A stretch of 64,000 nt of DNA from Blastocladiella emersonii ATCC 22665 (Eukaryota; Fungi; Blastocladiomycota), in contig JANHCV010000009.1 in assembly GCA_025594325.1 (NCBI GenBank), positions 1,116,001 through 1,180,000 of the forward strand. Reading direction: 5' to 3'. Positions 60,640-60,653 of the stretch are shown one piece after another. A model generated the notes under the pieces. It was not told where the DNA came from. It made no database searches and worked only from the letters and a program-made list of their open reading frames with translations. Each line of letters opens with the position of its first letter. Within the stretch, counting starts at the first letter, position 1. The position numbers and the translations under genes are program-made.

Positions 60640-60653
60640 ATGTAAAACAAATG
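60640..60653 (+). promoter_or_regulatory. Start-stop uORF ATG-TAA 5 nt before the main ATG (also at 63804, and on the minus strand at 22046, 25476 and 31293)
   Basis: CATGTAAA(A)C(A/G/T)(A/G)ATG is conserved in 5 of 5 copies with intact 5' ends; a regulatory role is inferred. Confidence 0.6.

Follow-up and report, generated by a model that had tools for sequence, protein, structure and literature searches.

Why should a start codon followed at once by a stop codon, ATG-TAA, stand directly before the start codon of several related genes in Blastocladiella emersonii? The window analysed here is the whole 64,000-nt stretch C21:1116001-1180000, taken from a GC-rich (59 to 75%) genome of 32.65 Mb in 21 contigs. 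The original prediction had placed five ATG-TAA elements in it, at 60640 and 63804 on the forward strand and at 31293, 25476 and 22046 on the reverse strand, and all five were found at these places. The window contains CATGTAAA five times, where shuffles lead one to expect 0.22 occurrences (none of 100 shuffles reaches five), and each of the five sites lies 10 to 11 nt 5' of an ATG that opens a paralogous ORF. The features that concern us are the following.

60639-60654, forward strand: 16-nt box CATGTAAAACAAATGG, with ATG-TAA at 60640-60645 and the main ATG at 60651.
60651-63482, forward strand: intact gene of family A, 943 aa, with no Pfam domain and a USP7 UBL1-2-like fold in the C-terminal half.
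60616-60621, forward strand: GCTCCC box, 23 nt upstream of the CATG, with a second copy at 60629-60634.
60663-60680, forward strand: downstream block like RACTYGNYGCAA, within the first codons, here with one mismatch.
63803-63818, forward strand: box CATGTAAAACGAATGG, with the main ATG at 63815 and a CACGTG at 63714-63719; the gene exits the window.
31279-31294, reverse strand: box CATGTAAAACAAATGG, with the main ATG at 31282-31280 and a CACGTG at 31368-31373.
29891-31282, reverse strand: ORF following the preceding box, 463 aa, N-terminal part only.
25462-25477, reverse strand: box CATGTAAAACTGATGG, with the main ATG at 25465-25463, followed by an ORF of 309 aa (24536-25465).
22033-22047, reverse strand: box lacking one A, CATGTAAACGAATGG, with the main ATG at 22036-22034 and a spacing of 10 instead of 11.
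21785-22036, reverse strand: ORF following the preceding box, 83 aa only and probably a decayed copy, with a CACGTG at 22127-22132.

The genes behind these boxes belong to a lineage-specific family. For the 943-aa protein, a word-based search returned no homolog at E <= 0.001, no encoding transcript contig is on record, and no Pfam domain is recognised, while a search of the genome itself gave about 55 matching pieces, mostly clustered on C21. The C-terminal half (window 62091-63479) is predicted to fold like the tandem ubiquitin-like domains UBL1-2 of USP7 (model pLDDT 70; Foldseek E 2e-7, probability 1.00), and the protein contains no protease domain; the model of its N-terminal part is poor (pLDDT 49). 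Neighbouring ORFs in the window correspond to ARS2/SERRATE, a GATA finger and a DUF4470 protein (Pfam). A continuous ORF of about 900 aa is present in only five or six family copies, many of the others being split or truncated. Most copies, such as 21785-22036, 24536-25465 and 29891-31282 on the reverse strand and many loci elsewhere on C21, have ORFs of 50 to 570 aa, or N- and C-terminal pieces in different frames; the short and split ORFs represent copies in decay or, alternatively, genes whose disordered middle part holds an intron that went unrecognised. In a more distant subfamily (C19, C20 and C21:1.52 Mb), a related N-terminal peptide is preserved and the box is absent.

Protein homology and pattern searches of the genome yielded 24 copies with the family N-terminus, and the conservation figures given here refer to the 22 that are non-identical. 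All 24 have CATG at -11/-12 from the start codon. Mean pairwise identity is 0.94 over the first 8 bases of the box, 0.70 over the first 45 coding bases and 0.64 at the third codon positions of these 45; over the 40 bases upstream it drops to 0.36, so the surroundings are indeed as diverged as had been claimed. Box positions 1 to 4 (CATG), 7 and 8 show no change at all among the 22 copies, on a CDS tree of 6.97 substitutions per site, and at the average CDS rate a tree of that length would leave any one position unchanged with a probability of only about 0.001. In the bases flanking the ATG-stop, C on its 5' side and AAAC on its 3' side, changes are absent or very rare. As judged from the aligned copies, the conserved unit is CATGYAAAAC-NR-ATGG, which is larger than ATG-TAA.

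The invariance of ATGTAA, which had been reported for the window, holds for its five copies but not for the family. The triplet after the upstream ATG is TAA in 17 of the 24 copies, TGA in one and CAA in six, so that an immediate stop is found in 18. Counted on the non-identical copies, position 5 has T 17 times and C five times, and position 6 has A 21 times and G once; all the variants (TA, CA, TG) are pyrimidine-purine steps. Start and stop do not both stand above their neighbours in conservation, the first base of the stop being the most variable of the box. On the tree, the distribution of TAA and CAA needs four changes, at least three of which are forced by well-supported branches. Monophyly of the CAA copies is rejected with a p-AU of 2.9e-9, a value to be read with two points in mind, since the grouping was chosen after a first look at the tree and gene conversion may decouple the history of the box from that of the coding sequence. 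One CAA lineage is represented on C6 by two identical copies of an intact 958-aa gene; from its upstream ATG, an out-of-frame ORF runs for more than 26 codons and overlaps the main start. Three of the five CAA lineages have early-truncated ORFs (association not significant, Fisher p 0.27), and for them the loss of the stop may partly reflect relaxed constraint.

If the element were kept as a start-stop, the T should be protected and TAA should be free to become TAG or TGA. What is seen is the opposite: no part of the box is less conserved than the stop, which has been lost at least three to four times, once in an intact gene, while TAG, although neutral under such a model, is never seen. Moreover, the flanking C and AAAC, for which a start-stop has no need, are conserved like the ATG itself. 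The best explanation would be that selection keeps the nucleotide box, not the stop codon. A general caution follows the same line: an ATG-stop that is perfectly conserved in a few paralogs need not be selected as a start-stop.

The box is not confined to the family. In the whole genome, YAAAACRAATGG occurs 20 times against 3 in the control, and 17 of the 20 are preceded by CATG; CATGCAAAACNNATG, the CAA form with its ATG, occurs 19 times against none, and CATGYAAAMNNNATG 61 times against 6. The bare 10-mer CATGYAAAAC, with 77 occurrences to 109 in the control, shows no enrichment. The box is strand-specific, its forward pattern being commoner than the reversed control. By these counts, the putative element is used at about 45 loci and is not a genome-wide motif.

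Genes outside the family that carry the box are of several kinds. At C2:440825, the TAA form precedes an LRR protein (Pfam LRR_4) whose tandem paralog has the CAA form; within the F-box/LRR family, of about 70 to 90 members, the box patterns searched match only this adjacent pair. F-box-like genes are preceded by the box at C20:1302492, C6:69887/132106 and C17:1712029. At C6:69887, in a copy that looks decayed, the paralogous ORF shares the frame of the first ATG owing to a one-base indel, and at C6:223518 a 248-aa ORF begins at the first ATG of the box. At C21:467865, stop codons end the frames of the two box ATGs after 3 and 2 codons, and the long ORF, membrane-type and 476 aa in length, begins 46 nt beyond. 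Depending on the locus, the long ORF that follows is therefore in frame with the first ATG, with the second, or with neither. The box, which occurs before unrelated genes in several frame arrangements, thus behaves like an element of nucleotide sequence that has no set relation to the reading frame. Non-family copies are mostly of the CAA form, and most are without a start-stop; at least 14 box loci lie outside the set that was read, comprising seven on C7 (520782, 632225, 677106, 694173, 838199, 849164 and 868706), others at C15:381353 and 1688246, C17:572582 and 1712017, and C5:292799, and, on C1, a tandem repeat of 7.37 kb. A genome-wide count of the motif had been proposed as a check on a family-wide brake, which would lose ground if the motif preceded unrelated genes, and with F-box/LRR, F-box-like and membrane-protein genes among those found this has in part come about.

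Some observations on these loci may be added. The region C2:435800-448500 is a tandem array of F-box/LRR paralogs. At the start of C1 (C1:3211-62183), nine copies of CATGTAAAACGCATG, 7.37 kb apart, place a box-like 15-mer in a tandem repeat that is possibly rDNA. No RRM domains adjoin the box sites on C7.

Upstream of the family genes, several motifs hold their position within sequence that has otherwise diverged. CACGTG is found in 13 of the 22 copies at -74 to -97, some 86 nt upstream. A GCTCCC-like box (at most one mismatch) is found in 17 of the 22, clustered at -23 to -25 and at -28 to -30, against 4 of 22 in a control window, and its spacing to the conserved box could also be kept by shared descent. 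A pyrimidine tract of CCGCT type lies directly 5' of CATG.

Taken together, these data lead us to a tentative preference, held with slightly less than even confidence, for the box as a promoter-proximal, initiator-like leader element of which the start-stop would be one allelic state. ATG-TAA would then be the T form of a 16-nt strand-specific cis-element, CATGYAAAAC-NR-ATGG, standing last in a module in which CACGTG (about 86 nt upstream), the GCTCCC-like box (23 to 30 nt upstream) and the CCGCT-type tract would come before it. The box would fix the start of transcription, with the tolerated pyrimidine-purine step about 30 bp downstream of the GCTCCC box. With the start fixed there, the upstream ATG would coincide with the very 5' end of the mRNA or precede it and would rarely, if ever, be used, and the start-stop would be at most a harmless closure of an ATG that the motif requires. 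An element acting at the level of DNA or leader is favoured by the contiguous conservation, which includes bases irrelevant to a start-stop, by variation restricted to the pyrimidine-purine step, by the upstream box at about 30 bp, by strand specificity, by frame independence and by the presence of the box before unrelated genes. The original prediction had named a transcription initiator motif as the alternative to its brake; this alternative fits the pattern of variation better and appears the likelier of the two, the role at the start site itself being putative. For Blastocladiella, no mapped transcription start sites were found in the open literature. A box that marked the transcription start would give a first handle on the core promoter architecture of a blastoclad fungus, and expression constructs could profit from the promoter/leader module, which is compact at about 110 bp.

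Like Inr-type core promoter elements, the box is short, strand-specific, placed at a fixed distance before the gene, independent of frame, and keeps a pyrimidine-purine step; the GCTCCC-like box, 23 to 30 nt away, recalls the Inr-type elements that are accompanied by an upstream element at about -30. However, the box matches no described Inr consensus (metazoan YYANWYY, oomycete or yeast), it is found at about 45 loci instead of the whole genome, and the leader it implies is very short: with a start inside the box, about 7 to 11 nt, which is little for a fungus. Other facts also speak against an initiator. In other genes, the C/T-rich tract reaches the ATG and is necessarily transcribed, which suggests by analogy that the box and the tract before it may be in the mRNA; the initiator-like CATCAAC of other genes lies 25 to 40 nt from the ATG, not 12; the closure of both ATGs within 2 to 3 codons at C21:467865 resembles selection on a transcribed leader; and the truncations in the CAA lineages weaken, to the extent that they reflect relaxed constraint, what can be drawn from the loss of the stop.

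The main rival, which we consider unlikely but worth weighing, is that the box is transcribed and acts in translation, an upstream AUG in weak context, 11 nt ahead of the main one, throttling the family. This could take two forms: a start-stop complex on the TAA and TGA copies that covers and gates the main AUG, and, on the CAA copies, an overlapping out-of-frame uORF that is translated. If the box is transcribed, a translational effect is possible because a ribosome on the upstream ATG would cover the main start. The presence of the upstream ATG in all 24 copies, at a spacing kept at 10 to 11 nt, and the retention of an immediate stop in 18 of them fit such a role, as do the resemblance of the C/T-rich tract before the box to the leaders of other genes and the quick stops after both ATGs at C21:467865. 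On the other side stand the unprotected stop and the constraint on bases that a start-stop does not need, as described above, and the identical 16-mer is also found before unrelated genes whose second ATG starts no long ORF. Furthermore, 5 nt between the stop and the main AUG is too short for normal reinitiation. An effect of distance is documented in reporter work, where start-stops retain ribosomes and repress most strongly close to the main start (PMC13338717), and this speaks for the translational reading as well: a box that was translated would be expected to act as a strong brake. Known minimal uORFs of this kind are the AUGUAA of plant NIP5;1 and the human start-stops (PMC13338717; bioRxiv 10.1101/2021.07.26.453809). 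Like them, the box has, upstream of the main start, an ATG with an immediate stop that is in most copies better conserved than the flanking sequence, and its placement near the main AUG is the arrangement that was most repressive in reporters. Unlike them, it has its stop repeatedly replaced by CAA while the surrounding 10 nt are fixed, it lies 5 nt from the main AUG, at some loci no ORF follows its second ATG, and its transcription is putative. Of the family-wide translational brake that had been proposed, what stands is the invariant upstream ATG close to the main ATG; what does not is the protection of the stop, and the box also precedes unrelated genes. A more specific version, which strikes us as rather improbable, would make the box a transcribed, lineage-specific translational gate, with an AUG exactly 10 to 11 nt (within one ribosome footprint) before the main AUG in several fast-evolving families of a zoosporic fungus, TAA and CAA being its two settings. 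If the box were translated, upstream and main AUG would be paired unusually closely throughout the family.

Two further explanations involve neither initiation of transcription nor translation of the box. It could be a remnant without function, left by a tandem duplication of 11-12 nt at the start of the family genes and homogenised by gene conversion between paralogs. In some copies, for example C21:1266508, the box (ATG-T-AAAAC-GA) matches the start of the ORF (ATG-G-AAAAC-CA) at 9 of 11 bases, which suggests such a duplication. Conversion is also seen: C21:1266508 and C21:1331983 are 99% identical over about 300 nt whose first bases are the CATG of the box, while elsewhere the genes are about 80% identical and the promoters have only islands in common (e.g. 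CACGTG), so that a conversion tract ends at the box. However, on a tree of about 7 substitutions per site the box, with an identity of 0.94, is better conserved than the coding sequence next to it at 0.70 (0.64 at third positions); it is also kept in distant clades (C15 and C21:1186-1192 kb) that show no recent conversion, and it precedes unrelated genes, with no match in the control. We thus hold this origin to be quite improbable. Still far less credible is the idea that an intron in the leader has its 5' splice site (CAT|GTAAAA) in the box. All the variants (GT-A, GC-A, GT-G) do obey the rules of donor sites, but splicing there would remove the invariant main ATG together with the conserved N-terminal codons, no conserved acceptor was seen, and the A at both +5 and +6 is unlike the usual fungal donor.

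The context of the main start codon deserves a separate comment. As in a Kozak-type context or TISU, which serves initiation on short leaders, an A-rich stretch directly precedes the ATG and a G occupies +4; in contrast to these, position -3 is C in nearly all box copies, and the conserved CATG lies outside every known context window. The other gene starts in the window and in the fetched loci (about 30 genes, a small sample) mostly have a C-rich (A/C)CC before the ATG, and a plain Kozak-context reading was rejected, the A-rich AAAAC(R)A of the box being unlike this usual context.

Several other candidates were set aside. For RNA structure, the region from -30 to +70 gave nothing beyond shuffled controls (mean z 0.12). 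A small GC hairpin that the main clade has about 20 nt 3' of the main AUG was dropped, its seemingly compensatory version in the distant clade being in a different register. The terminus of a mobile element was likewise rejected: no inverted partner was listed, the boxes near family genes are all oriented with the gene, and positioned promoter boxes lie upstream. The downstream block like RACTYGNYGCAA falls inside the first codons of the family, and a DPE-like reading of it was abandoned because the gene families differ in how far it lies from the box (20 to 28 nt).

Two motifs recur at gene starts more widely. A RACTYGNYGCA(A)-like block is found 0 to 20 nt after the start ATG of unrelated genes, in various frames and also where the box is absent, and a CATCAAC(A) motif, initiator-like and loosely resembling the CAA form of the box, is found 25 to 40 nt upstream of the ATG of several long ORFs. 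Their places are as follows.

RACTYGNYGCA(A)-like block: window 60663-60680; window 3261-3271 (C21:1119261); window about 50320-50330, reverse strand (C21:1166330); loci L047, L061 and L058.
CATCAAC(A) motif: C17:499744; C2:442687; C19:63741 and its copies; C19:104162; window about 56531, reverse strand.
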